Assembly (NCBI RefSeq): GCF_006345805.1
Contig: NC_042997.1
Location: forward strand, 59,644,001 to 59,708,000
Length of the DNA: 64,000 nt
Source: Octopus sinensis
Taxonomy: Eukaryota
Direction: 5' to 3'
The notes beneath the pieces are model-generated. The model did no database searches, was not told the origin of the DNA, and saw only the letters and a list, made by a program, of their open reading frames with translations. Below, piece by piece: positions 10,067 to 37,459 of this stretch. Positions within the stretch are counted from its first letter, which is position 1. The number at the start of each line of letters is the position of its first letter. The position numbers and the translations under genes are program-made.

Positions 10067-10356
10067 ATGGTGAGGAAAATGAGTTCTCGTGTAGAGGACG
10101 AAGAAGACATTATTGATGTTGATGTGAGCGATGATGAGAAATACAATGCAAATAATGTCTTCCAGGGCCTCTGGATCCCTTATCCGGATCAAGTTGCTGA
10201 AATGTTTGAGAAACTGGACAATGGTGGCTTACCAGTTCTTAAATGGAAATGTCCTGGTCGCAGGCCACCTGAGGTGGAGAAAGAGGATGAAGATATGGAC
10301 ATAGAACAGAAGTTAGTTGTGGAACAGAAAATAGAAGAACTCAAAGAGGAAAAAAA
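10067..10356 (+). CDS. PAGR1: PAXIP1-associated glutamate-rich protein 1 homolog, first visible coding exon (290 nt, ends phase 2)
   Basis: ORF MVRKMSSRVEDEEDII...LWIPYPDQVAEMFEKL...PGRRPPE...EEKK resembles the PAGR1 core as I recall it (human PWMPPPSEIQRLYELL...RRPP plus acidic stretch). Donor GTAAGC at 10357. Polypyrimidine acceptor ttttag at 10041-10043 implies an upstream exon. Confidence 0.85.
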
Positions 10357-11886
10357 GTAAGCAAAATAGTTTTACTGCATGAATGTATATGTGTGTGTTT
10401 GTAGGATCAGGTAAGTAGTTGTTGTTGAGCTCCAGGTCAGGCCTGATTATGTAGACTTATGAGCAAAGGTTTTCCAACTGTGACCATCCTCTCCATTTCT
10501 TTTCCTCTCTTTAAGATGGGCATGTAACTTGAAGTAGATTTCCTAGTGCCAATGCTATGTAAAAAGCATTGATACACTCTATGAAGTGGTTGGCATTAGG
10601 AAATGTTCCAGCTGTTGAAACCATGCCAAAGCAGACATTGGAGCTTGGCACGATCCTCTGTCTTACCATCTCTTGCTAAATCATACAACCATGCCAGTAT
10701 GGAAAACATGTTTAGTGGTGATGATAAGGATTTCTTATTTCTAAAAGCTTCTGTGATTGTGTAAAGGTTCCTTCACTGGCTGGCATAGAGACTTCCTCAT
10801 TGACTCTTTCTCAGATTAAGGTGAAGTAAATTCCAGAATGGTCTCATCTGGGAATTTATTCCTTACAACAATTGAAATTATCAAACTCTTCCAAGAACTC
10901 TCCTGCAGACTAATTGTCGTCAACACAGACAATCACTAGTTTCCTTGAATTTCAAACTTTTGCTATTCAGTTGGTTGGTAGTGGACTTATGCCATGTCTT
11001 TTAAAATTTTATTTCACTTTATTTTTATTGTAAAATTAAATAGCATAGTGAGTTGGTAGAAGTGGTAAAACATTATAGTAAATGATTTTACAGTATTTAT
11101 AAGGCAGTCACAGTTATGGTTGTGGTTAAGTTTGCTTCATGCGACTTGATTTCACATGTGATCCCAAATGCAGATGGCAGAACATCTTGTTGCTAAAGCC
11201 GACTGGTGAAAGTAACAGACATGTTTCACTGGTATTAGATCTCCTCAGCAAAGCATCTTCAACTCTCTTTACAAAACTTTTGAGGAGATCAATATCTGTC
11301 TGTCTATCTGTGTATGTATGTGCGTGTGTGGAACAAAGGGAATGTGGTATATAGTTTTGTTTATCTTCATTTTAGCTCCAAATCCTATGGAATTCTACTT
11401 CTGTCTCTGTGATCAAAGAAATTCATCCATTTTCTTTATCACTATTCCTGGGAAGGATTATGGTGGGTAGAGTCCTCTGGCACATCCTCCTTAGGGTCCT
11501 GTCAGAAGCAACCATCATTGCACTTTCCATTAAATAAGTGCCAATTGCATCAAATAAGTACCAGTAGTTAATATACTAGAGATTGACTTGATCAATTATA
11601 TATCTTCTTTGAAAATATTGGTTTTGTACATGACTGAAAGAACTCATGGGTTTGAACAACAGGTATTATGAGCAGATTTAGTCAGTAGACAACTGGGAAA
11701 ATTTATTGATAAAAAAATCAGCTTAGGAAAAGGCATTGGTTTTCTGTGTTTTAAAACAACATACATGAAAAACTAACTTGTGTGAGGGTAATCAACCAAG
11801 TGCATTTATCAAATATAAAATGAAGATAATAAATATAAATGTTGGTTTCAAATTTAGGTACAAGGCCACAATTTCAGTGGGTGCTG

Positions 11887-12505
11887 TACAGGGTAGTATC
11901 AAAAAGTTCCTGGACTAATTATGTTTAACAAAAAATAATTTATTTACCTAAGTTTTTGCATCATCTCCTTCGAAATAGTCACCTTGCACAGCAATACACT
12001 GGTCCCAGCTTTTCTGCCACTTTTGGAATCCAGCCTGGAAGCCATTTTCTGTAAGCGAATCAAAGACCTTCTGCAATTTGCTCTAGATCTTGACAGTGGA
12101 GTTAAAACAGCGACCTTTGAGCTTCATTTTCATCTTGGGGAAGAGATGGAAGTCCACAGGTGCTAAATCTGGGGAATAGGGTGGGTGGAGAAGCAATACC
12201 ATGTTTTTGTGAGAAAAACTCACAAGTGAGGAGAACTCGATGACAGGGTGTGTTGTTGTCATGAAGAATCCAATTTTTTGTGCTCCACAGATTCAGTTGC
12301 TTTCACTGAATGTCCTCAAACACTTCACAATGTTGTAGTAGAACTCTCAATTGAGGGTCTGGTCCTGGGGTGCGAATTCATGATGCACAATACCATGGAT
12401 ATCGAAAAAATGGTGAGCATGCTCTTGATTGAGCTGCAGCTCTATTATCCCTTCATTTATGGAGATGAAGGTCTCTTCCATTGTAACAACTGCTGCTTCA
12501 TCTAA
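11887..12505 (-). mobile_element. Mariner transposon 3' relic
   Basis: TA|CAGGGTAGTATCAAAAAGTTCC TIR-like end. Minus translation FFDIHGIVHHEFAPQDQT...YSPDLAPVDFHLFP...QKWQKSWDQCIAVQGDYFEGD, with stops and frameshifts. Confidence 0.8.
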
Positions 12506-13574
12506 CACAGGCCGTCATCATCATCATTTAGCACCTGCTTTCTTTGTTGGCATGGGTTTGTCTTTCCAAATACCAACCACTCCAAAAGTGTAGTAGGTGC
12601 TTTTTATGCGCCAGTTATGAAACACCGGCATTGGCTACAACTCAAGCAGGTCTCAGTTATTTGTCATTACCTCTGTGAGGCCCAAAGTTCGAAGGGTACT
12701 TTTTAGAGTACTCGAAGGGTACATTGGCACACGAAACTGGCAATGGTCACAACTACAATTTCACTTGGTTTGACAGATGAAAAAATGGACATTGAAAATT
12801 GATGTTGATGATAATGGCTAGAATCTTCAGTCCACTTTAGGTGACAATGCTGTGCACATGTTGACCTACTTGTCAGGAATAGGTCATCTGGAATTATTAT
12901 TTGAAATGGAATCTTCTTATATATACATGGAAGATATATTTATTATTTACTTAACTCTCTGAAAGAAGAGCTAAGCATTGGCTCTTGAATACATTTTGTA
13001 AATAATAAATAAATATTTTTTGTGCTACATGATATAATGACCAGAGAGGTCCTTGCTTTGTAAATAAAATCTACACTAAGAAGCTGCTGCTAACAAACTG
13101 TTGTATAATGATGGAACATGTTGTTTCCTCTCATTCTTTTCAGTACAATTTTGAAAGAAAATGAAGGGGTTAAGCAAGTTTTACTCTTGATACTCATTAA
13201 TTTATGTATCAAAATTGGCAATAATTTTTTTTTTCCAAGATATTGTAACTTAGAATTGGATGTGATATTAGAAAGAAGAAACATTTTTTTTTACAAGGAT
13301 GGAAACAATAGAAACATATTATTTCTATCCTTGCCTGGTAGGTTGTTTAAGTTGTTAGAGAAATTGTTTTTTTTTTCTTTTTTCCATTGTCTTTTTTACA
13401 GCTGGATGCTTTTCCTTACTGTTAACCACAGAACTGATATGTGTTGAACTGGAGCAAGCAGAGTTATGTACCTTGTTTAGGAATGCAGCTTAATGTAATA
13501 TAATAGCATGTTTCCCACAAGGAATGAAAAAAAATTTTTTTTCTCATGTATAATTGCCAAACTAACAAAATAAA

Positions 13575-16191
13575 TAAACATGGACGTACGTACAGCCATG
13601 CTACATGGTAGTGAAACATGGGCCGTGACTGCTGAGGATATGCGTAAGCTTGCAAGAAATGAAGCCAGTATGCTCCGATGGATGTGTAATGTCAGTGTTC
13701 ATAATCGTCAGAGTGTAAGTACTTTGAGAGAAAAGTTGAACCTAAGAAGTGTCAGTTGTGGTGTGCAAGAGAGACGGCTGTGCTGGTATGGTCATGTGAC
13801 GAGAATGGCTGAAGATAGTTGTGTGCAAAAGTGCTACACCCTAGCAGTTGAGGGAACCTGTGGAAGAGGTAGACCCAGGAAAACCTGGGACGAGGTGGTG
13901 AAGCACGACCTTCGAACTTTAGGTCTCACCAAGGAAATGACTGAAGACCGAGTCCTATGGAAGTGTGCTGTGCATGAGAGGACCCGGCAGGACTAGTCAG
14001 GCCATATCCCATGGCCCCTACCTGGGACGTAGTCGATCCACCTGTGTATACCTTCCTTCTTGTGACACTTGTGAACACCTGCTGAGGCAAGTGAAAATCA
14101 ATCAAAATAGATGAACATCAATGGAATTTGTATCTTTGTGGTACCAGTGCCTGTGGCACACAAGAAAACCATCCGAACGTGGCCGTAGCCAGTACCGCAT
14201 CGACTGGCCTCCGTGCTGTGGGAACATGGTGGCACATAAAAACACCATCCGAAGACCCGGCAAGACTAGTCAGGTCATAACCCGTGGCCCCTACCTGGGA
14301 CGTAGTCAGTCCACCTGTACATACCTTCCTTCTTGTGACACTTGTGAAGACCTGTTGAGGCAAGTGAAAATCAAAACAAATCAAAATAGATGAACATCAA
14401 TGGAATTTGTATCTTTGTGGCACCAGTGCCGGTGGCACACAAGAATCCATCCGAACGTGGCCGTAGTCAGTACCGCATCACTGGCCATCGTGCTGTGGGC
14501 ACATAACAAACACCATCCGATCGTGGCCGTTCGCCAGCCTCATCTAGCACCTGTGTCGGTGGCACATAAAAACACCATCCGAAGACCCGGCAAGACTAGT
14601 CAGGCCATAACCCATGGCCCCTACCTGGGACGTAGTGAGTCCACCTGTGCATACCTTCCTTCTTGTGACACTTGTGAAGACCTGTTGAGGCAAGTGAAAA
14701 TCAAAATCAAAACAAATCAAAATAGATGAACATCAATGGAATCTGTATCTTTGTGGTACCAGTGCCGGTGGCACACAAGAGAACCATCCGAACGTGGCCG
14801 TAGCCAGTTCCGCATTGACCGGCCTCCGTGCTGTGGGCACGTAACAAACACCATCCGATCGTGGCCGTTCGCCAGCCTCATCTGGCACCTGTGTCGGTGG
14901 CACATAAAAACACCTTCCGAAGACCCGGCAAGACTAGTCAGTCCACCTGTGCATACCTTCCTTCTTGTGACACTTGTGAAGACCTGTTGAGGCAAGTGAA
15001 AATCAAATCAAATCAAATCAAAATAGATGAACATCAATGGAATTTGTATCTTTGTGGTACCAGTGCCTGTGGCACACAACAAATCCATCCGAACGTGGCC
15101 GTAGTCAGTACCACATCGACTGGCCATCGTGCTGTGGGCACATAACAAACACCATCCGATCGTGGCCGTTCGCCAGCCTCATCTAGCACCCGTGTCGGTG
15201 GCACATAAAAACACCATCCGAAGACCCGGCAAGACTAGTCAGGCCATATCCCATGGCCCCTACCTGGGACGCAGTCAGTCCACCTGTGCATACCTTCCTC
15301 CTTGTGATACTTGTGAAGGCCTGTTGAGGCAAGTGAAAATCAAAATGAAATCAAAACAAATCAAATCAAATCAAATCAAAACAAATCAAAATAGATGAAC
15401 ATTAATGGAATTGTATCTTTGTGGTACCAGTGCCGGTGGCACACAAGAAAACCATCCGAACGTGGCCGTAGCCAGTACCGCACCGACTGGCCTCCGTGCT
15501 GTGGGCACGTAACAAACACCATCCGATCGTGGCCGTTCGACAGCCTCATCTGGCACCTGTGTCGGTGGCACATAAAAACACCATCCGAAGACCCGGCAAG
15601 ACTAGTCAGGCCATAACCTGTGGCCCCTACCTGGGACGTAGTGAGTCCACCTGTGCATACCTTCCTTCTTGTGACACTTGTGAAGACCTGTTGAGGCAAG
15701 TGAAAATCAAAACAAATCAAAATAGATGAACATCAATGGGATCTGTATCTTTGTGGTACCAGTGCCGGTGGCACGTGGCACACAAGATAACCATCCGAAC
15801 GTGGCCGTAGCCAGTACCGCATCGACTGGCCTCCGTGCTGTGGGCACGTAACAAACACCATCCGATCGTGGCCGTTTGCCAGCCTCATCTGGCACCTGTG
15901 TCGGTGGCACATAAAAACACCATCCGAGCGTGGCCGTCTGCCAGCCTCGTCTGGCACCTGTGTCGGTGGCACATAAAAAACACCATCCGAGCGTGGCCGT
16001 TTGCCAGCCTCGTCTGGCACCTGTGTCGGTGGCACATAAAATCACCCACTACACTCTCGGAGTGGTTGGCGTTAGGAAGGGCATCCAGCTGTAGAAACAC
16101 TGCCAGATCTGACTGGACTGGTGCAGCTTTCGGGCTCCCCAGATCCCAGTTGAACTGTCCAACCCATGCTAGCATGGAAAGCGGACGTTAA

Positions 16192-16233
<42 letters not shown>

Positions 16234-16268
16234 TGATGATGATGATGATGATGTGATGATGATGATGA
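13575..16268 (+). mobile_element. 5'-truncated RTE-clade LINE with a tandemly amplified 3'UTR and (TGA)n tail
   Basis: ORF 13580-13996 AMLHGSETW...RRLCWYGHV...GRGRPRKTW is an RTE RT C-terminus. It is followed by the array, the family-F terminus and (TGA)n at ~16192-16268. Confidence 0.85.
13981..16040 (+). repeat. Higher-order tandem array: 6 units of 273-367 bp built from ~62-67-bp hairpin modules
   Basis: Unit starts (gacccggcaRgactagtca) at 13981, 14254, 14584, 14922, 15223 and 15590, plus two extra modules after 15927. Confidence 0.9.
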
Positions 16269-16285
16269 TTATTATTATTATAATT

Positions 16286-16498
16286 ACCTTTGCGCAGCTT
16301 CTAACGCTGGAGATGTTCTACAGTGTCAGTTGTTCACTACCAGTGAACTAAGGTGTTACACCTTATTTTTTTGAGCACCTTCCGGAGTATTCGAGCAGTT
16401 CCAAGCAGTGCTGTTTTCTGCAAGTGCTCCACCCTTATTGCAGCTCCTATTTGTTTCACGTACTTCTCGAGATTTTTGCTCACTGTTCCCAGGGCTCT
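16286..16498 (-). mobile_element. R4/Dong-type (REL endonuclease) non-LTR retrotransposon 3' fragment in (TAA)n
   Basis: Minus translation RALGTVSKNLEKYVKQIGAAIRVEHLQKTALLGTARILRKVL matches the R4/Dong C-terminal ALG...LQKxALLGTAxILRxVL. Flanked by (TTA)n on both sides. Confidence 0.75.
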
Positions 16499-16640
16499 GT
16501 ATTATTATTATTATTATCATCATCATTTAGTAGTTTCAGTTCAGTTTTCATTTCTCAAATTTGCCATTGTTCGTTACTGAAGATGTAAAGAATATTTTCC
16601 TTAATAAAGGTTTTGTTTGCTTACTTTTTATTTTTTTCAG

Positions 16641-16723
16641 AGTGCCACAACCTACAGAATTTGATTTTGATGATGGCAGCCTAGAGCAATCTACCACTAA
16701 ACTAACTCCTAGAAAAACACCTG
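16641..16723 (+). CDS. PAGR1: PAGR1 internal coding exon (83 nt)
   Basis: tttttttcag acceptor and gtatgt donor at 16724. Phase 2 in and phase 1 out fit both neighbours. Encodes (K)VPQPTEFDFDDGSLEQSTTKLTPRKTP(G), matching the PAGR1 PTEFDFDD...RxTPG motif. Confidence 0.92.
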
Positions 16724-17129
16724 GTATGTGTATATATATATGTCATTCCATTCTATTTAGTTGTTGAATATTTGCTGCAGTGGGAGAGATTCCCATATTG
16801 TTAGGCTTATTGTTAACATCTTATTTGATATTGGAGTGAAATATCCATTAAATGTTGAGATGAAATTATGTATAATGTGCTGGTATCTGCTATAAATTTT
16901 TTTGTCATGTCTCTAGGCAGGACACTTTACCTCAGACATAGGCAACCTGCAGCCAGCAGGAATTTCTGAAAGCAATGTCTAACAAAATAATTACCTTGAA
17001 TTTTTTTAGTAGTGAAGTCTGTCTGATGATGAGCTACTTCTCATGCAGTTCACTTTTTGAAACTGGTTATCCATGCATGCCTGCTTTACATACATTAGTT
17101 TAATTAAATGTTAAGACTACATACTAGAT

Positions 17130-17443
17130 CAGGGCTAGCCAACCTGAGGCATGCAGCCCGCAAACTTTTATATTGTGGCCCACTTGATACCTTCTTGAAA
17201 TGAATTTATTTAAGCAAGCATTTAAAAATTTTATCAAAAATTAAAGATCGTAACGGAAAGTAAAAAAAGGAAGATACTGTTTTTGCAATGATATTTCATG
17301 TTGAATCAATGATCATTCATTCAATATTGTAATAATAGCTTGAGAAAGCAAAATGCTTTCAATTTTGTCAGTATGTAAGTGGCCCTCAAAAAACTTTCTG
17401 TGATTAAAGTGGTCCACAATGTAATTCAAGTTGGCCAGGCCTG
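17130..17443. mobile_element. hAT (Buster/Charlie-type) MITE
   Basis: TIR CAGGGCTAGCCAAC / GTTGGCCAGGCCTG (12 of 14) and perfect 8-bp TSD TACTAGAT at 17122-17129 and 17444-17451. Confidence 0.88.
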
Positions 17444-18688
17444 TACTAGATCATATGAAGATATTCGATATGAAATAAAGGAAAGGTTATAGGAAATCAC
17501 TTCATTGCTTAGGAGTCAATTTTAATTTGGTTGTTTAAGAAAATATATATTTATGTTGGTTGTTTTGGTAGTTTCATTCTCTCTGTCACCACTAAGTCAG
17601 TGGGAAGATTTTTTTTTTAAAGTAAAATTTTTGCCTAAGGCAGGCTATTTTACTTTTTCCATTGCATAAGCATATAAATAAAATCAGGTTATCATCCTCA
17701 CCGTTATCATTGTTTAACATCTACTTTTCGATACTTGTATAGTGTGGACAAAATTTGTTGAGGCATATTTTTTACAGCTGAATGCCCTTCCTGTCGCCAA
17801 CCCTCAGCTGTGATAGAACTGTGATAGGTATCTTATTATCTGTTATTGTCACATATAATGAACATGTTATGATAGGTTTCTTGAGTATTAGAAATTGATG
17901 TAATCCTCAGCTGCATATTATTAAAACAGTCACCACTGATAACAGAGTTTTTGGCTTGCTTGTGCTATATTTCTGATAAATAAACTCTTAATTTTATTGA
18001 GGCTTTTGACCGTATAGTTGGTCCTTACAGGGAAAAGTAGATTTTTTTTTCTTGTAGAATATGAAGCACAGTGGCTGAGGAGTTAGTGTTGATCTTCTAA
18101 CTACATGGCATGGTTCAAATCTTACTATTGTGTTCCTAACTATGGTACATAACTCCTTGCTCTGGTTTCCCTGACTGCTAAAAATATACTTTTAACACTT
18201 AGCTGATATTTGTGGTTAGTAGTAGGAAAGACATCCAGATGGAAAAACAGTTTCAACAAATAAACTATTGCACCTGTACTCGCATGGCATTATGGATCCA
18301 AAATAGCAGCAAAAAGAAAAATTTAAGTGAAGGTGTACAGTCTCAGCAATATAAATATAATGGTCTGGAAAGCAGATTATTAGCCAAATACTTTCAATAT
18401 ATGAAATGGTCTCACCTATCCTATGATCTCATTCTGTATTTAGTCATACTATGGTGGTTTTAGGATGTATTGTGACCATAAGAAAACTTTGATACGTAGT
18501 CTGTAAGGTTGGTGTGTTTAGTAGTGACAGAATAAACGGTTGTGGACATTGCTCAGAATTTGTTCAGGTTATTAGGTGGTGAGCATTCATCTCTGGAATA
18601 TCTTGACAATAAAATAGACAAAAACAAATTGTATTATATTTTTGTTTTTATCATTTTCTCATGGGTATTTTTTTTCTTTTCAATCCAG

Positions 18689-20715
18689 GTTCATCAAAAG
18701 GCAAAAAGAGAGTTGCCAGAATGGATAAAGTGCTTGACGATCTTAATCGACAAAGGAAAGCCACTGAAGCTACAAAGGACCAGCGAAAGAAAGGTACCCC
18801 AAAGTCTGCTCGAGGATCAGCAGGTGGACGTTTTTTCTCATCACCTCGAACGCCAATGTCTGCTGAAAAGTATGCGCCTTCTATAACACCACCAGGTACA
18901 CCTCGATCTGTTGGAGCAAAGAGCTCACACAATCGTCTCTTGAGTTCTAAATACACTCCACCTTTACGTTCCACCTCCTCGTCTCCTCGTACATTATCCA
19001 GTCCCAAATCTCAAACTGGTCAGAGTGCAGAGAAAAATGCTGCACAGACTACATCCACTGTTACTAAAGTTCCTCAAAGCACACTTCCAAGCGATGCTGA
19101 GTTCAATGCGACCGAAGTGACTCAAGCAGAATCAGTGGAAAGCCCCATCAAGACAAGTGGGTCATCCACTGGTTTGTCTATAGCCATGACCACTGCTGTC
19201 GTCAGCTCCTCGAAGTACACACCTCTAACCCAAGCTCTCATGACTGAACCAATGGTAAGCTCTTACCCCTCTAATATAACTCTTTTTAATAAACCAAGGG
19301 TTTCTCTTCCACAAAATGTGCCACAATCACTATCTGGTACCACTACAGCTAATGCTAGCTGTAACAGCACTACTACTACTACTACTTCTACTACTACTAC
19401 TACCACCATTACTACTACCACCAGCACCACTTTGGCTCCTACTTCTCCTATTGGTGCACCTGCCAGCTCTCCTCTTTCTGCCACTGCACTTGCAGTATCT
19501 ACTCAGGCTTCACACTTTGCCAGCAATACTCAACCAGCTCATTCGGTGGCAGGTATTTCACGATCTAGCATTTCCCTCTTCCCCCATCAGTCTGCCCAGG
19601 TTGCACAACAGCCTTCTGTGGTCAGAACAGCTCAATCCTATCTTGCTAATTCTCCTATGGCTCAACCTGTACAATCTCCTGCTCAGTCACCTTTGAACCA
19701 ACATGCCCAATCACCAATGATGCATCCTGCCCACTCACCATTGATCCAATCCGTACAGTCCCCTATGGCACAGCCTGTTCATTCACCCATGCCTCAACCT
19801 GTCCATTCACCTATGGCAAAACCTGTCCAGTCACCCATAGCTCATCCTGTTATGTCTCCTATTGCCCAGTCACCTATCAGTCAAACTATTCACTCTCCAA
19901 TGAGTCAACACACTCAGTCCCCTATGAGTCAGCACACACATTCTCCCATGACACAAATCTCAATGTCTCCTTTACAGCAGCCTGCTCTGTCCCCAATGAA
20001 TCAACCTGTCCCGTCCCCTACTGCTGCCCAGTCTCCACTGTCTTCAGCTGCTCCATCACCTTTACAAACTGGTGCTCTGTCTCCAATTACACTCCAGTCC
20101 AATCCAATGGCTCAGACGGCTTCTGCACACCGGGTAGTCCAACAGAATCTACCCCAGACTGGTTTGATTACTAAACCCCGCCAGGCTGCTTCAGGCAAAC
20201 CAAAGTTAAGTTCAGACAAATCTAAACATGTAGCCTCAGGTAAGCCAAGAGGTCCCCCAACTTCTCCATATGCTGCATCACCTGCAGCTAGTCAGCCTAG
20301 TTTTAGTTCTCTACAAGCCCAGCTTAGCCAGGGACTGCTGCAACAGAAGGCTCAGTCTGCTCCACAGCAACTGTCTCAGGCTACTCAGCAGCAGATCAAC
20401 CAGTTGCTTCAACAACAACAACAACAACAACAACAACAGCAGCAGCAGCAACAACTACAACAGCAACAGCAGCAACAAAGATCCCAAGTGACATCACAAC
20501 AAGTGATACAAGCTTCTCAGTTACAGGCTCAGACCTCACTGGAACAGCAATTGCAGCAGCAGCAGCAATTACAGCAACAACAACAGCAGCAACAACAGCA
20601 GCAGCAGCAGTTGCAACAACAGCAGCAGCAACAGTTGATACAAGCTTTAAGTCAACAAAATGTCAATCAACAACAGTTGAAACTTAGTTTAGCACAGCAG
20701 CAAATTTCGCAGCAA

Positions 20716-20747
<32 letters not shown>

Positions 20748-23700
20748 ACAGCAATTACAGCAGCTACAACAACTGCAACAGCAACAACAATTGCAGCAAC
20801 AGCTACAGCTACAACAACAATTACAACAACAACAGCAACAACAACAACAGCAGCAGCAACAACAAACACCTCAAGTTGCTGGTCAGCAGGTGTCCGGTGT
20901 GCAGCAGTCGCAAAGTGTGATGCAGCAGCAGATAACCCAACAACTTACTCAGCTGATCAAACAACAGAAAACGCGACAGTTTGTCTCTCCGCAACGTGTT
21001 GCCCAGCAGCTTGCGAATCAAGCAGCATCTCAGAAGTTAGCACTACAACAGCAGCAACTGCAGCAGTTACAACAGCAGCAGCTGCAACAACAACAACAGA
21101 TGCAGCAACAGCAGCTACAGCAACAACAGCAGCAGCAGTTGCAACAGCTTCAGCAGCTAGTTCTTCAACAGCAACAACAGCAGCAGCAGCAACAGCAGCA
21201 AGCTCAGATAGGAAACCAAACCCCAATAGGGCAAAGTTCACCCCAGTCTCAAGTAAGCCAGGCCTCTCCACAGTCAGTCCTTAGCCAACCCTCCCCACAA
21301 GCATCAGTAGGTCAAGCGTCTCCACAGACTCCATCTAGTCAGGCTTCACCCCAGGCTGTCATTAGTCAATCATCTCCACAGGCCTTAATGGGTCAGACAA
21401 TCTCCCAGCAAGCTGTTAGTCAGTCACCATCTCAGGAGCCCACTAGTAAGTTGCAGCTGAGTGCCGCAGCCTCGGTTCAGTTAGCAAAGCCAAGAGGAGC
21501 TCCTTCAGCTTTACAAGCAGCTTTGTCACAAATGAACCGAGCCAGCCTTAGCCAGTATTTTCAGGCAGCCAAAGCCCGTGCAAACCAAGCAAATCACCCC
21601 CAGTTATTAAAATCCCTTTCTCTGACCACACAGGCTAACCAATTGCTTACATCTCAATCACAGCCAACTCAGTCTCCCACCACCCAAACTCTGTTTCACA
21701 ACACTCAGATTCCTATCAGCTCAGCTCAAAACATTGCTCAGGTTAACGCTGCTACTCTTCACAATCAGTTATCTTCAAGAAGCCATGTTCCTTCAACTAA
21801 TCCTTCTAATATTGCCCAATCACCTGTCACCTCTATATCACAGTCTCCTCCAGCTGGCACACAGCAATCTTCACTTCTGCGCAAGGATGATGTACTCACT
21901 GCACAAACTCTTGGAATTTCTCAAAATAAGATTTCCTCACCAGATTACAAACTTTCCATTTTTACACAGGCCACCACTCCACAAACAGGATCGTCAGGAC
22001 CAATTTTGACCCGAAAGTCTTCTCTGAGCGGTAGCGAAGTAGATTTATCATCACAGGCAATTATGGAATTGAATGCAAACCAGTTAAGAAGTGTCGCTGT
22101 GTCTGGTCAATCTTCCAGTGGTGCCACCGCTACAGCAACTTCACTCAGTCAAGGTGGTACTTTATTAACTCCACAAAGCAGAACTTTATCTCAGAACATA
22201 CTGCAAACCAGTGGTGAAACTTCTGTTGCTCAGCAAGAGCGATTCACTCTAAGCTCTATGGTTCAGGGTGCTAACAATTTAACTAGCTCTAAACAAGTGC
22301 CTCATCAAAATGCATCTGAGGCAAATGAACCTTCGCCTTCAGCCACTCGGGAACGTTTGTCATTGTCATCTATGGTGCGATCATTTGACCTTAGTAGTCT
22401 GACACAACAAGAAAAGCAAACATTGTCATCTTTAATACAATCCAGAGAATTGTCATCACTTCAGAACCAAGAACGTTTTTCTCAACATTCAGAAGGAGAC
22501 ATCGTATCCCTTGCCCAACAGTACTCCAGTGTCCCAAAAGTCCAATCATCTGTTCCAGTGGGTTTCTCCCAATCCCATGCAGGGTCAATAGGAGATCCTG
22601 CTGTTACACAATCATATATGATGCCAAAGTCAGCAATAATTGGAAAGCCTCCTCCACCTTATTCAGTTGCTATTGCTGAGAAAGCACAAATGATTTTAAC
22701 TTCCATCGCTGGACGAAAAGATGCCAATGCAATAAGTCATCTTTCATCGGGTGTCGCTGATAAATCAAATGTAGCATTCGTTAAAGGGACTGAAATGTCA
22801 TTGCCTTCATCCATTTCTTATAATTCTGGAGTTAATTGGAATACTTTACAAACTGTTTCAACTGATTCAGGAACTAATATTGTATCTAGTACACATACGA
22901 TTACTACTCCACAGTCAGGTGTGAACTCTCTGGCAACCAACCAAATTTCACAACTTCTCCTCCAAAAGACACCAATGCAAACTGTGCAGCAATTTGATGC
23001 ACAAAGAAAAGATGATAAACAAACGTTAGATTTAGTTAACACCTCTTTGTCTGCAGTTAGAGCTGCCATCTCTCAGTCTACCAGCAAAGAGAGTCCGTTA
23101 GTGCATAAAAAGGTATTAGGATTTTCTTCTGTGAAGAATTCAAGTAATGCCGTGAGTACACCTCAACAGTCAGATGTTGTCAACACTGTTGCGACCAATA
23201 ACTCTTTACTGCAGCACATGCTAGTGTCTTCAGCAACAGAAGCTGCAACATCTGCATCAATACTCCCATCACTTCCCACCCAAGAACTTAATCTTCACAA
23301 GTTGTCTTTGAGTAGTGTTTCTCTTCCTAGCAGTACTGCCTTAACTCAGTCAACAAGCCACATTTCAGCAGCAGCAGTATCAACATCAACAGCAACAACA
23401 ACAGCACCCACTCGTCCACGTCTAAACACTATTGCTGCTTTACTGAACATAGATTCAGGGCAGCGGACGCAAGCTGAATTACGGAAACTATCTTTGGCAG
23501 GTATCTCAGCAGATGGTTCCACGGGTATTTCAAATTTTGGACAAAGTTTAGGCATAGGTTCTGCTTCTAATTATTCTTCTGTTGTAACTACTGCTGGCAA
23601 AGCAATTACTTCTTTGAAACCTTTGACTATTGTAACTAGTAGTAATACTGTTGTTGCAGGTCATGCAGTCAAACCCCGACCTAAAATTGATGCTAATCAG

Positions 23701-23781
23701 TCAGTGGCCTTTTCAGAAAACACTTTTCAAAGTGATCAACAACAGCAACAATCTAGCAATGCTTCTGTTTCTGAATCTTAA
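18689..23781 (+). CDS. PAGR1: PAGR1 terminal coding exon (5093 nt): conserved KRVARMDKVLDDLNRQRK, then a ~1.67-kaa S/T/P/Q-rich disordered extension
   Basis: Acceptor ttttcaatccag (AG at 18687-18688), phase 1 matches the previous exon. KRVARMDKVLDDLNRQRK resembles human KREARLDKVLSDMKRHKK. The frame stays open to TAA at 23781. Exons sum to 5466 nt = 1821 aa plus stop. Confidence 0.8.
20410..21207 (+). repeat. Coding CAA/CAG polyglutamine-rich region
   Basis: Multiple Q runs interrupted by L/S/T/A, in frame within the PAGR1 terminal exon. Confidence 0.95.
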
Positions 23782-35962: not shown

Positions 35963-36205
35963 TTAGTCTTGAATAATAAACTCTAGGTCAGAAAACTGAC
36001 GCAAGTGAAACTGTGTCATCTGGTAGTTGATCATGGTACGAATAGCAAAATAACCTGAAAACATTTCGGTCAGAACAAACCCAAACATGACTATATGAAC
36101 AGCTATTTCAAGAGGAAATTTCTGGCCTTCATTGAACAGCAGAAATATAATTAGAGGGAACTGCATCAGTAATGTCAAAAGCCAAGATCCAGCAAGCTCA
36201 GGTAC
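35963..36205 (-). CDS. TMEM17: TMEM17 exon 4 (terminal)
   Basis: tttttgcag acceptor. VPELAGSWLLTLLMQFPLIIFLLFNEG...PLEIAVH...FHLRQF then stop, matching TMEM17 VPELAGFWLL...FLLFNEG...FHL. Full protein is 191 aa. Confidence 0.93.
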   Translation of the reverse strand, partial: VPELAGSWLLTLLMQFPLIIFLLFNEGQKFPLEIAVHIVMFGFVLTEMFSGYFAIRTMINYQMTQFHLRQFSDLEFIIQD

Positions 36206-37459
36206 CTGCAAAAAGATAAATAAATATTAAATACTAAATAAAACCCTTTGCTAATTGTGCATGTATAGTTTTAGCTCCCGTAAAAATATGTTGCTTCTAA
36301 TGTAAATCAAAAGTACGTACATGTCATTGCCATATCATTAATTATTACTTCACTTAATTAAGAAAGTACATGGTTAGTAAAGATGATTAAAATTAAACTG
36401 AATATTAGAATATATACTTTATTATTTTTCAGTTCAGTATGAGTTAAAATTTTGATAGGAAGTCAGTAAGCATTAGTAATACAATAGGATTAATTTGACT
36501 GACTACAGCACTTCCACAATAGAAACTATTGTTCCTGTGCATAGTGAAGTGTAATTCTATATCTCATATATTTCCTTATACTATTGGAATCTATACAGAA
36601 TTTCATGAGTCCAAAATGCCCTGGGGTTCTAAAGAGGAGAGAGCAAGTTCAGAGGGGTGCAGTTATGACTTGGAAGGATTAGGTCCCATATCAGCCTTTT
36701 GATCAAACAAATCTATGATCAATGGTATTTCATCCTTGATCATCTCTCCTTTTTTAGATATCAGACTACATTATTCAATATTTTCTTTTTAATGATGGTT
36801 GGGTATGACCTGAAGGAGATTTGGCTGTTATTTCTTATAGGTTGAGTAACTATATGGGGGCTCCCATGACAAGTAGAGTGGCTAGTGTATGTTTTGATAG
36901 TGGAGGTGTACAGATTGTGGTAGTGATAGAAAAGACACTGTGACAATAGGATTTGTTGAAAGTGAAGTTATGATGGTCATATGGAAGGTTTTTTTTAAGG
37001 AACCATAGTCTACAGAAGGTTCAATTTCCACTTTCTTTTGATTAGCTTTGAGGCAGCTTTTGATTATTACTTATTCTATTGGTCTCTTTTTGCCTAACCA
37101 CTAAGTTACAAAGACATAAGCACATCAACACTGGTTGTCAAGTGGTGGTGGGGGACAGACACACACACACATATATATGTATGATGGGCTTCTTTCAGTT
37201 TCTATCTATCAAATACACTCACAAGGCTTTGGTCAGTCCAACATTGACAATGACAAAATTGCTTGGTAATGATGTGTGTTGTTTACAGTTTAATAACTTC
37301 ATCTTATATAGACTCTTTTACTCGGTCTCTGTAATTATTCTCATGCCACTAAGGTTTCCCTCTATTGAGAACTAAGTAAAAGACAAATTGAAAAAAGAGA
37401 AAACAAAACAACAAGGAGTCCTCAGAACCATTGTTGTTGTTGCTGTAGTGATTACATAC

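Follow-up and report, generated by a model that had tools for sequence, protein, structure and literature searches.

The question raised by this locus is how much protein an adaptor of the chromatin machinery can carry behind its conserved domain, and whether all of it is always present. The locus lies in a stretch of 64,000 nucleotides (nt) of Octopus sinensis DNA (NCBI RefSeq assembly GCF_006345805.1, contig NC_042997.1, positions 59,644,001 to 59,708,000, forward strand), here called the window, in which positions 18689-23781 form the large terminal coding exon of a homolog of PAGR1 (PA1). PAGR1/PA1 serves the PTIP-KMT2C/D machinery as an adaptor that is usually regarded as small and invariant, and in vertebrates it binds PTIP/PAXIP1 both inside and outside the KMT2C/D complex. 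An earlier note, made from the letters of the window alone, had read the octopus gene as PAGR1 with a disordered C-terminal extension of ~1,670 residues, possibly a lineage-specific rewiring of an H3K4 methyltransferase complex. The reading that we consider probable, if by no means certain, is that of a PAGR1 adaptor with a conserved, large and mostly disordered tail, the central 905 codons of which form a conserved in-frame exitron (an interval with splice sites at both ends lying inside an open protein-coding exon) that toggles a glutamine (Q)-rich module.

PAGR1 identity and the open terminal exon

The frame on the + strand is stop-free from 18613 to 23781 (stop codon at 23779-23781; 1,722 codons from stop to stop), within which 18689-23781 constitutes a single open exon of 1,697 codons, with no internal stop in the frame within 18691-23781. 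Stops interrupt the exon 78 and 80 times in the remaining forward frames and 82-134 times in the three reverse ones, and a run of 1,696 open codons has a probability of P ~2e-36 by base composition, mononucleotide shuffles reaching at most 276 open codons. The donor of exon 1 (gtaagc) begins at 10357, that of exon 2 is the GT at 16724-25 (GTATGT), and the acceptor AG of exon 3 stands at 18687-88; the 16723/18689 junction rebuilds TPGSSKGKKRVARMDKVL, read as ...TPRKTPG^SSKGKKRVARMDKVL... (the caret marking the junction here and below). Joined in frame, the three exons (Table 1) give a coding sequence (CDS) of 5,463 nt, that is 1,821 amino acids (aa). The protein length, the open 5.1-kb exon and the 16723-18689 splice of the earlier note were thus all reproduced from the frame, the AG and GT sites and the restored peptide. 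The 954-aa isoform of O. vulgaris has an additional 5' coding exon (MAGSSMF...) ~14 kb upstream of exon 1 (L007, OX597814.1:54404513-54431470), and therefore the 5' end of the octopus gene may lie beyond the window start; no MAGSS... exon was found inside the window, and in O. vulgaris it sits beyond the window range.

The assignment to PAGR1 is carried by the profile PF15364 (PAXIP1_C), which has a curated gathering score of 27 bits. Exon 1 alone scores 33.9 bits over profile positions 4-82, while exon 2 and the start of exon 3 each score 17 bits, over positions 78-102 and 107-130, respectively; the O. vulgaris protein CAI9715147 reaches 85.2 bits, its isoform P0014 85 bits and the cuttlefish protein described below 88.5 bits. 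The O. vulgaris protein and the window differ by zero mismatches across the PAGR1 domain, and the spliced translation of the window is 99.1% identical to isoform P0014, the differences being a single substitution and a 7-aa indel, neither of which falls in the domain; at the nucleotide level the window and O. vulgaris GCA_951406725.2 are 98-99% identical. The invariant columns of the family, taken from a nine-sequence alignment (W-x-P, W-x-CPGR, FDFD, TPR and K-x-VA-x-x-D), are carried without exception by the window translation, as GLWIPYP, KWKCPGRR, EFDFDD, TPRKTPG and KRVARMD. In a profile search of the 2.72-Gb, 13,516-contig genome, the locus of the window was the sole PF15364 locus, and no second, short PAGR1 paralog was found there. 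The gene is a single-copy coleoid-cephalopod ortholog of PAGR1/PA1, and the homology that had been claimed for the N-terminal ~150 aa stands, with the domain found at one locus in the genome. By size, a descriptive trait more than a defining one, it departs from the ~250-aa vertebrate PAGR1, being 1,821 aa long, or 916 aa with the exitron removed. The three-exon layout and a downstream TMEM17 neighbour on the opposite strand are common to the window and to a genomic locus of a decapodiform (L004), on which the open reading frame (ORF) downstream of the PAGR1 homolog is 71% identical to the TMEM17-like exon of the window; the PAGR1-TMEM17 neighbourhood is thus kept across coleoids.

The tail in cephalopods and in other animals

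A search with the last 597 residues of the octopus protein returned three clusters. The first holds the O. vulgaris and O. bimaculoides models of 954 and 956 aa; the second holds a 1,673-aa protein, labelled cuttlefish here on the basis of its clustering at 90% or more with Acanthosepion (Sepia) pharaonis CAE1269110 (1,591 aa, 'unnamed protein product'); and the third is a 1,535-aa ORF on the genomic ENA contig of another decapodiform, the L004 locus mentioned above. The octopus, cuttlefish (1,673 aa) and decapodiform (1,535 aa) sequences align collinearly from end to end, through the PAGR1 domain, an S/T/P-rich stretch, the SPxQ repeats, the Q-rich block and a series of C-terminal islands. 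Across the alignment these islands read ERFTL..M / RERL.L.SM / QQEKQTLS.L, GKPPPPYSVAIAEKA, DDKQT.DLVNTSLSAVR.AIS, NNSLLQHML, RPRL..IAALLNIDS and a terminal VSES, and in the window they are represented by ERFTLSSM / RERLSLSSM / QQEKQTLSSL, GKPPPPYSVAIAEKA, DDKQTLDLVNTSLSAVRAAIS, NNSLLQHML, RPRLNTIAALLNIDSG and the same VSES.

The cuttlefish CDS is complete on three RNA-derived contigs of 6.5-7.1 kb, which come from three separate sequencing runs. In the one examined (L001), exons 1-3 are contiguous, unlike at the homologous genomic loci, where kb-sized introns lie between the exons, and an AATAAA followed by a poly(A) run closes the contig; because of these features, the cuttlefish contigs are mature mRNAs bearing the entire tail uninterrupted. 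No octopus transcript contig with the long form was found in the protein collection over the length ranges searched, an absence that is uninformative in that short-read assemblies plausibly break at CAA/CAG tracts. Between the two decapodiforms the ratio of nonsynonymous to synonymous divergence (dN/dS, Nei-Gojobori) is 0.20 for the exon, 0.29 for its pre-exitron part, 0.147 for the part homologous to the exitron and 0.24 for the post-exitron part; octopus versus decapodiform ratios were not used, as synonymous sites are saturated at that distance (proportion of synonymous differences, pS, ~0.75). By these comparisons the tail is shown to be older than the octopus-decapodiform split and to have been kept in frame under purifying selection since. 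A tail new in the octopus lineage is contradicted by the full architecture being common to cuttlefish and another decapodiform.

The repeats listed by the earlier note, namely (ACT)n, the 24-nt SPxQ units, the CAA/CAG tracts, the 27-nt SPQ units and PPPY, are all present. Its description of the DNA as slippery holds insofar as CAA/CAG tracts do exist; the glutamine codons are, however, interleaved (CAA 167, CAG 160), with the longest pure runs being 9 CAA and 5 CAG, and the tracts are therefore less slippery than a pure repeat and than was implied. Its disordered tail is supported by AlphaFold2 runs, which were made on single sequences with no alignment depth and are indicative only: the mean predicted local distance difference test score (pLDDT) is 39.1 over the post-exitron 603 residues, where a few helices at 59-66 fall on the islands QQEKQTLSSLIQSRELSSL and DDKQTLDLVNTSLSAVRAAIS, and 39.8 over the 905 exitron-encoded residues, of which residues 1-370 and 653-905 score 22-35 and the Q/L-rich residues 372-652 are predicted as long helices with a pLDDT of 65-82. 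These models fit a chain that is disordered apart from short helical elements for binding and a Q/L segment prone to form helices or coiled coils. No Pfam family was matched by the cephalopod tail, whether as the whole exon beyond the PAGR1 domain or as the post-exitron alignment, and a sequence profile search of the PDB with the tail matched no chain.

A profile of the PAGR1 domain, run against 1.84 billion representative proteins, gave 357 matches. Among the best 150 of these, the octopus model (923 aa) alone exceeds 700 aa, fifteen representatives have at least 400 aa, and those from outside the cephalopods are all 654 aa or shorter; the longest non-cephalopod homolog of any search has 782 aa. 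The gastropods among the matches listed combine an N-terminal domain with a C-terminal tail in Aplysia (576 aa), Elysia (578 aa) and Plakobranchus (639 aa), and further ones are Physella (481-498 aa), Bradybaena (443 aa), Bulinus (428 aa) and Biomphalaria (406 aa); another listed representative has 484 aa. Unionid mussels show the same layout at 635-639 aa (Potamilus 635, Sinanodonta 639), as does the 782-aa homolog, which came from a homology search and has a domain closely similar to that of Aplysia. C-terminal S/T-rich tails of 250-620 aa are thus common in gastropod and unionid-mussel PAGR1. The Mytilus 'PA1' (253 aa) and the Capitella protein (232 aa) are tailless, and the sea urchin PAGR1 has its ~450-600 extra residues on the N-terminal side. 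Beyond ~40 residues after DKVL, no homology between the gastropod or bivalve tails and the cephalopod tail was detected by hhalign (probability 0.2%). A disordered C-terminal PAGR1 tail is therefore a molluscan habit; what sets the cephalopods apart is that theirs is 3-6-fold larger, contains a Q/L-rich block and carries conserved motifs towards its C-terminus. Whether equally long extensions are routine in invertebrates had been raised as a limit on novelty: since tails of 250-620 aa are routine in gastropods and unionids, an extension as such is not new, whereas the cephalopod size, Q/L block and C-terminal motifs do remain special.

An in-frame interval with splice signals inside the exon

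The O. vulgaris models of 954 and 923 aa, identical apart from their 5' exon, skip the sequence that corresponds to 19255-21969 of the window, as does the O. bimaculoides model of 956 aa, with the junction in all three being ...LMTEPM^A(A/T)TPQTG.... For the 923-aa isoform, a search for an exact entry returned none. The donor is ATG^GTAAGC at 19255 and the acceptor is tttttacacag^GCC, in fuller form TTTTTACACAG^GCC or CTTTCCATTTTTACACAG^GCC, ending at 21969, so that the ends are canonical GT-AG and both lie inside the open protein-coding exon. In the window the interval measures 2,715 nt; its O. vulgaris counterpart has 2,727 nt, that of the cuttlefish transcript 2,226 nt and that of the second decapodiform 2,208 nt, every one of these lengths being divisible by three. 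Its splice sites, which were set by the annotations independently of the conservation test, are nucleotide-identical in octopus, cuttlefish and the second decapodiform over 11 nt at the donor and over 20 nt at the acceptor, the latter being the second-longest three-way identical run of the exon. Against a baseline of 0.345 for three-way codon identity at conserved degenerate residues, the six identical codons in a row at the acceptor have a probability of P ~2e-3. One of the five GT[AG]AG sites in the octopus exon is conserved, namely the donor at 19255, and so are two of the 17 acceptor-like sites, the exitron acceptor and one at 22667.

That the same interval also evolves as coding sequence emerges from the comparison, by gene region, of the window with the O. 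vulgaris genome. The true introns of the PAGR1 gene show 51 mismatches in 4,318 nt (1.18%) and 12 gap events, as against 1 mismatch and 0 indels in the 1,884 nt of the interval that are not polyglutamine (non-polyQ), a difference from the intron rate with P = 5e-9 by Poisson and P = 2e-7 by Fisher test, and 1 mismatch and 1 indel in the 2,378 nt of exon-3 flanks before and after it. The exon outside the Q-rich block has 2 mismatches in 4,262 nt and is near-invariant even at synonymous sites; no part of the gene changes faster from one octopus genome to the other than the Q-rich block itself, with 2.3% mismatches, mostly CAA<->CAG, and 2 in-frame indels (+2 codons each). Because of the near-absence of change in the non-polyQ interval relative to the true introns, the interval is, on this comparison, under coding-type selection within Octopus. 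The exon of O. vulgaris is fully open over 1,707 codons, its sole indels being +2 Q, +2 Q and +7 codons, all in frame, and the stops in close relatives that the earlier note had named as a contrary outcome are thus not seen there; its claim of selection on translation is supported by the open frame, by the dN/dS between decapodiforms and by this near-invariance. Coding constraint and conserved splice signals, taken together, amount to an exitron signature. Splicing within the exon, which had likewise been named as a contrary outcome, is partly seen: the public octopus models found, from two species, without exception lack 19255-21969 and keep the frame, while the cuttlefish mRNA contigs run through it uninterrupted.

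Several points weigh against the exitron reading. No one species shows both isoforms in the data examined: the retained form is seen as mRNA in the cuttlefish contigs only, with the Sepia pharaonis model also retaining it, and the spliced form in octopus gene models only, which are not reads. Gene predictors at times draw an intron through low-complexity sequence, and O. bimaculoides proteins may have fed into the annotation of O. vulgaris. Part of the nucleotide identity at the acceptor could have a cause other than splicing, because the acceptor overlaps the conserved peptide DYKLSIFTQ, and a block at 22657-22685, which has no splicing rationale, is more conserved than the acceptor. The single-sequence basis of the structure predictions counts on the same side.

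In a different model, the exon is constitutive over all of its 5.1 kb, with the 1,821-aa protein as its sole product, and the octopus models of 923-956 aa are artefacts of a predictor or of a protein lift-over that skipped the repeats via a fortuitous GT...AG. In its favour, every cuttlefish mRNA contig and the S. pharaonis model retain the interval, which is under coding constraint in decapodiforms as well as in Octopus, and the octopus junction is known from gene models only. It nevertheless leaves unexplained a strong consensus donor and acceptor that are nucleotide-identical across lineages with saturated synonymous sites, where nearly all other GTRAG and acceptor-like sites are unconserved, as well as the use of the same junction by two annotation projects and in two 5' isoforms, and we regard it as rather unlikely. 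An ordinary intron, always removed in octopus and with its frame a relic, would agree with the public octopus models found, all of which lack the interval, and would make the octopus protein ~916 aa, with the interval translated only in decapodiforms. This is improbable, given 905 codons without a single in-frame stop where the alternative forward frames have 35 and 29, a frame that is open in the second octopus genome with indels only in frame, and a non-repeat part that has no indels and diverges at less than one twentieth of the rate of the true introns of the gene. That read-through or fusion captured the tail from elsewhere, as a gene or domain in its own right that works independently of the PAGR1 part, which would be a mere leader, is hardly credible: although no homology to other molluscan PAGR1 tails, Pfam or PDB was detected, the exon runs on from KRVARMDKVL, where the domain ends, into the tail without any boundary, the initial ~40 residues of the tail can be aligned with gastropod and bivalve PAGR1, and the genome has no second PAGR1 gene to provide the canonical function.

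The conserved block at 22657-22685 (29 nt; wider, 22629-22686) is an observation in its own right. It codes for PYSVAIAEKA just past PPPP, does not differ by a single nucleotide among octopus, cuttlefish and the second decapodiform, and is the longest three-way identical run in an exon whose synonymous sites are otherwise saturated. It overlaps the acceptor-like site at 22667, which is in phase 1, so that the frame would be lost on joining to the 19255 donor. An RNA hairpin was considered as the cause and rejected, as the predicted pairs are invariant and so show no covariation, and shuffled sequences fold about as well (z = -0.71). The block might be a splicing enhancer or be related to RNA editing.

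Table 1. Features of the PAGR1 locus and its neighbour in the window
Feature	Position	Strand	Remarks
Coding exon 1	10067-10356	+	ATG at 10067; MVRKMSS...EEK plus 2 nt; N-terminal two thirds of PAXIP1_C domain
Coding exon 2	16641-16723	+	VPQPTEFDFDD...TPRKTP; PAXIP1_C profile positions 78-102
Large terminal coding exon	18689-23781	+	5,093 nt including stop; opens with KRVARMDKVL, end of PAGR1 domain
Pre-exitron S/T/P-rich tail	18769-19254	+	In both isoforms; first ~40 residues resemble gastropod and bivalve PAGR1
Candidate in-frame exitron	19255-21969	+	2,715 nt, 905 codons; protein residues 314-1218
(ACT)n threonine run	19368-19423	+	Repeat analysis
SP(M/L/I)xQxxQ/H repeats, 24-nt period	19680-19951	+	Common to cuttlefish
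Q/L-rich block	20380-21210	+	Five Q runs of 12-15 residues; mixed CAA/CAG codons; long helices predicted by AlphaFold2
SPQ repeats, 27-nt period	21265-21383	+	Repeat analysis
Post-exitron C-terminal 603 residues	21970-23778	+	Mostly predicted disordered, with conserved islands
PPPY (PPxY) motif	22651-22662	+	Invariant across all cephalopod sequences compared
TMEM17-like exon	35975-36211	-	PF09799, 31 bits; synteny anchor downstream, outside PAGR1 gene

Intron 1 of the gene holds a segment of ~3 kb (13498-16549) that is missing from the orthologous O. vulgaris intron. Within it are a 140-aa ORF (13574-13996), which by eye resembles the C-terminal tail of a reverse transcriptase of non-LTR (long terminal repeat) retrotransposons and has no Pfam match, a G+C-rich tandem array with periods of 301 and 367 nt (14633-15722), a 63-nt repeat (15843-16041) and an (ATG)n run (16192-16269). 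Elsewhere in the same intron, a short ORF on the - strand (12083-12302) gives a weak match to the DDE_3 transposase family (E = 0.019, below the cut-off) and is probably a decayed DNA-transposon fragment, by eye similar to the C-terminus of a Tc1/mariner transposase.

Proposed role and comparison with known systems

In the model that we propose, the ~150-residue N-terminal domain would dock on PAXIP1/PTIP as in vertebrates, and the exon that encodes the end of this domain fuses it to a mostly disordered C-terminal tail of ~1,550-1,700 residues. The interval within that exon holds the T-run, the SPxQ repeats, a Q/L-rich, helix-prone block of ~280 residues and the SPQ repeats, and its removal keeps the frame. 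Retention would yield the 1,821-aa form, as in the cuttlefish mRNAs, and splicing the 916-aa form, as in the octopus gene models, with both predicted isoforms keeping the PAGR1 domain and the motif-bearing C-terminal tail. The latter offers putative protein-binding motifs, namely PPPY for WW domains and the LxxLL-like ISQLL and IAALL, while the Q-rich module, confined to the long form, could self-associate or serve as an activation domain. The gene would in this way tether a tunable coactivator or scaffold intrinsically disordered region (IDR) to PTIP-containing complexes. A more far-reaching version is possible, and we put it forward tentatively: an exitron of 2.2-2.7 kb that predates the octopus-decapodiform divergence would switch a Q-rich, helix/coiled-coil-prone module of ~740-900 residues on the sole PAGR1 subunit, and one gene would thereby supply two kinds of PTIP/KMT2C-D-associated complex, one scaffold- or condensate-competent and one plain.

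The coleoid PAGR1 tail is seven times the size of the vertebrate protein, selected over a deep divergence and probably equipped with an optional Q-rich module. It offers a concrete case for how lineage-specific IDRs attach to conserved chromatin complexes, and for whether exitron splicing regulates such IDRs outside vertebrates and plants; no paper was found in the literature that links either exitrons or PAGR1 with cephalopods. There is also an annotation problem, in that the octopus databases hold the short spliced form only and the cuttlefish databases the long form only, neither of them named PAGR1; the entries are called 'hypothetical' or 'unnamed', a mislabelling by pipelines that the earlier note had foreseen.

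Human PA1 has 254 aa and is an MLL3/4 complex component and a steroid-receptor coactivator (PMC9219552). With vertebrate PAGR1 the octopus protein shares the PAXIP1_C domain with all invariant residues, FDFD and KRVARMDKVL, and the status of a single gene. It differs in that the vertebrate protein stops soon after DKVL and has an N-terminal Glu-rich region, whereas in octopus the domain stands almost at the very start of the protein and is followed by ~1,670 further residues; the LXXLL box LYELL of the human protein is MFEKL at the octopus position. Gastropod and unionid PAGR1 resemble it in layout, with an N-terminal domain followed by an S/T-rich low-complexity tail and a similar stretch of ~40 residues past DKVL, but their tails are 3-6 times shorter and lack the Q-rich block, PPPY and IAALLNIDSG. 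Q-rich coactivator subunits of the same machinery are NCOA6 and, through its Q-rich linker, vertebrate PTIP. In these a long Q-rich disordered region is likewise placed on the KMT2C/D-PTIP module, on another subunit and with no sequence homology found to the octopus tail.

The closest parallel for the splicing itself is the recently described exitron splicing in vertebrates, e.g. of TARDBP, which removes IDRs and in which the nucleotides flanking the donor are conserved (bioRxiv 10.64898/2026.10.06.756961). The octopus PAGR1 interval differs from the TARDBP type in being cephalopod, much larger (2.2-2.7 kb), frame-preserving and equipped with a strong GTAAG donor, and in that its isoforms so far come from different species. 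It resembles that type in having its donor inside IDR-coding sequence, in sparing the structured or conserved parts of the protein on removal, and in a nucleotide identity at the donor flank that goes beyond amino-acid need.

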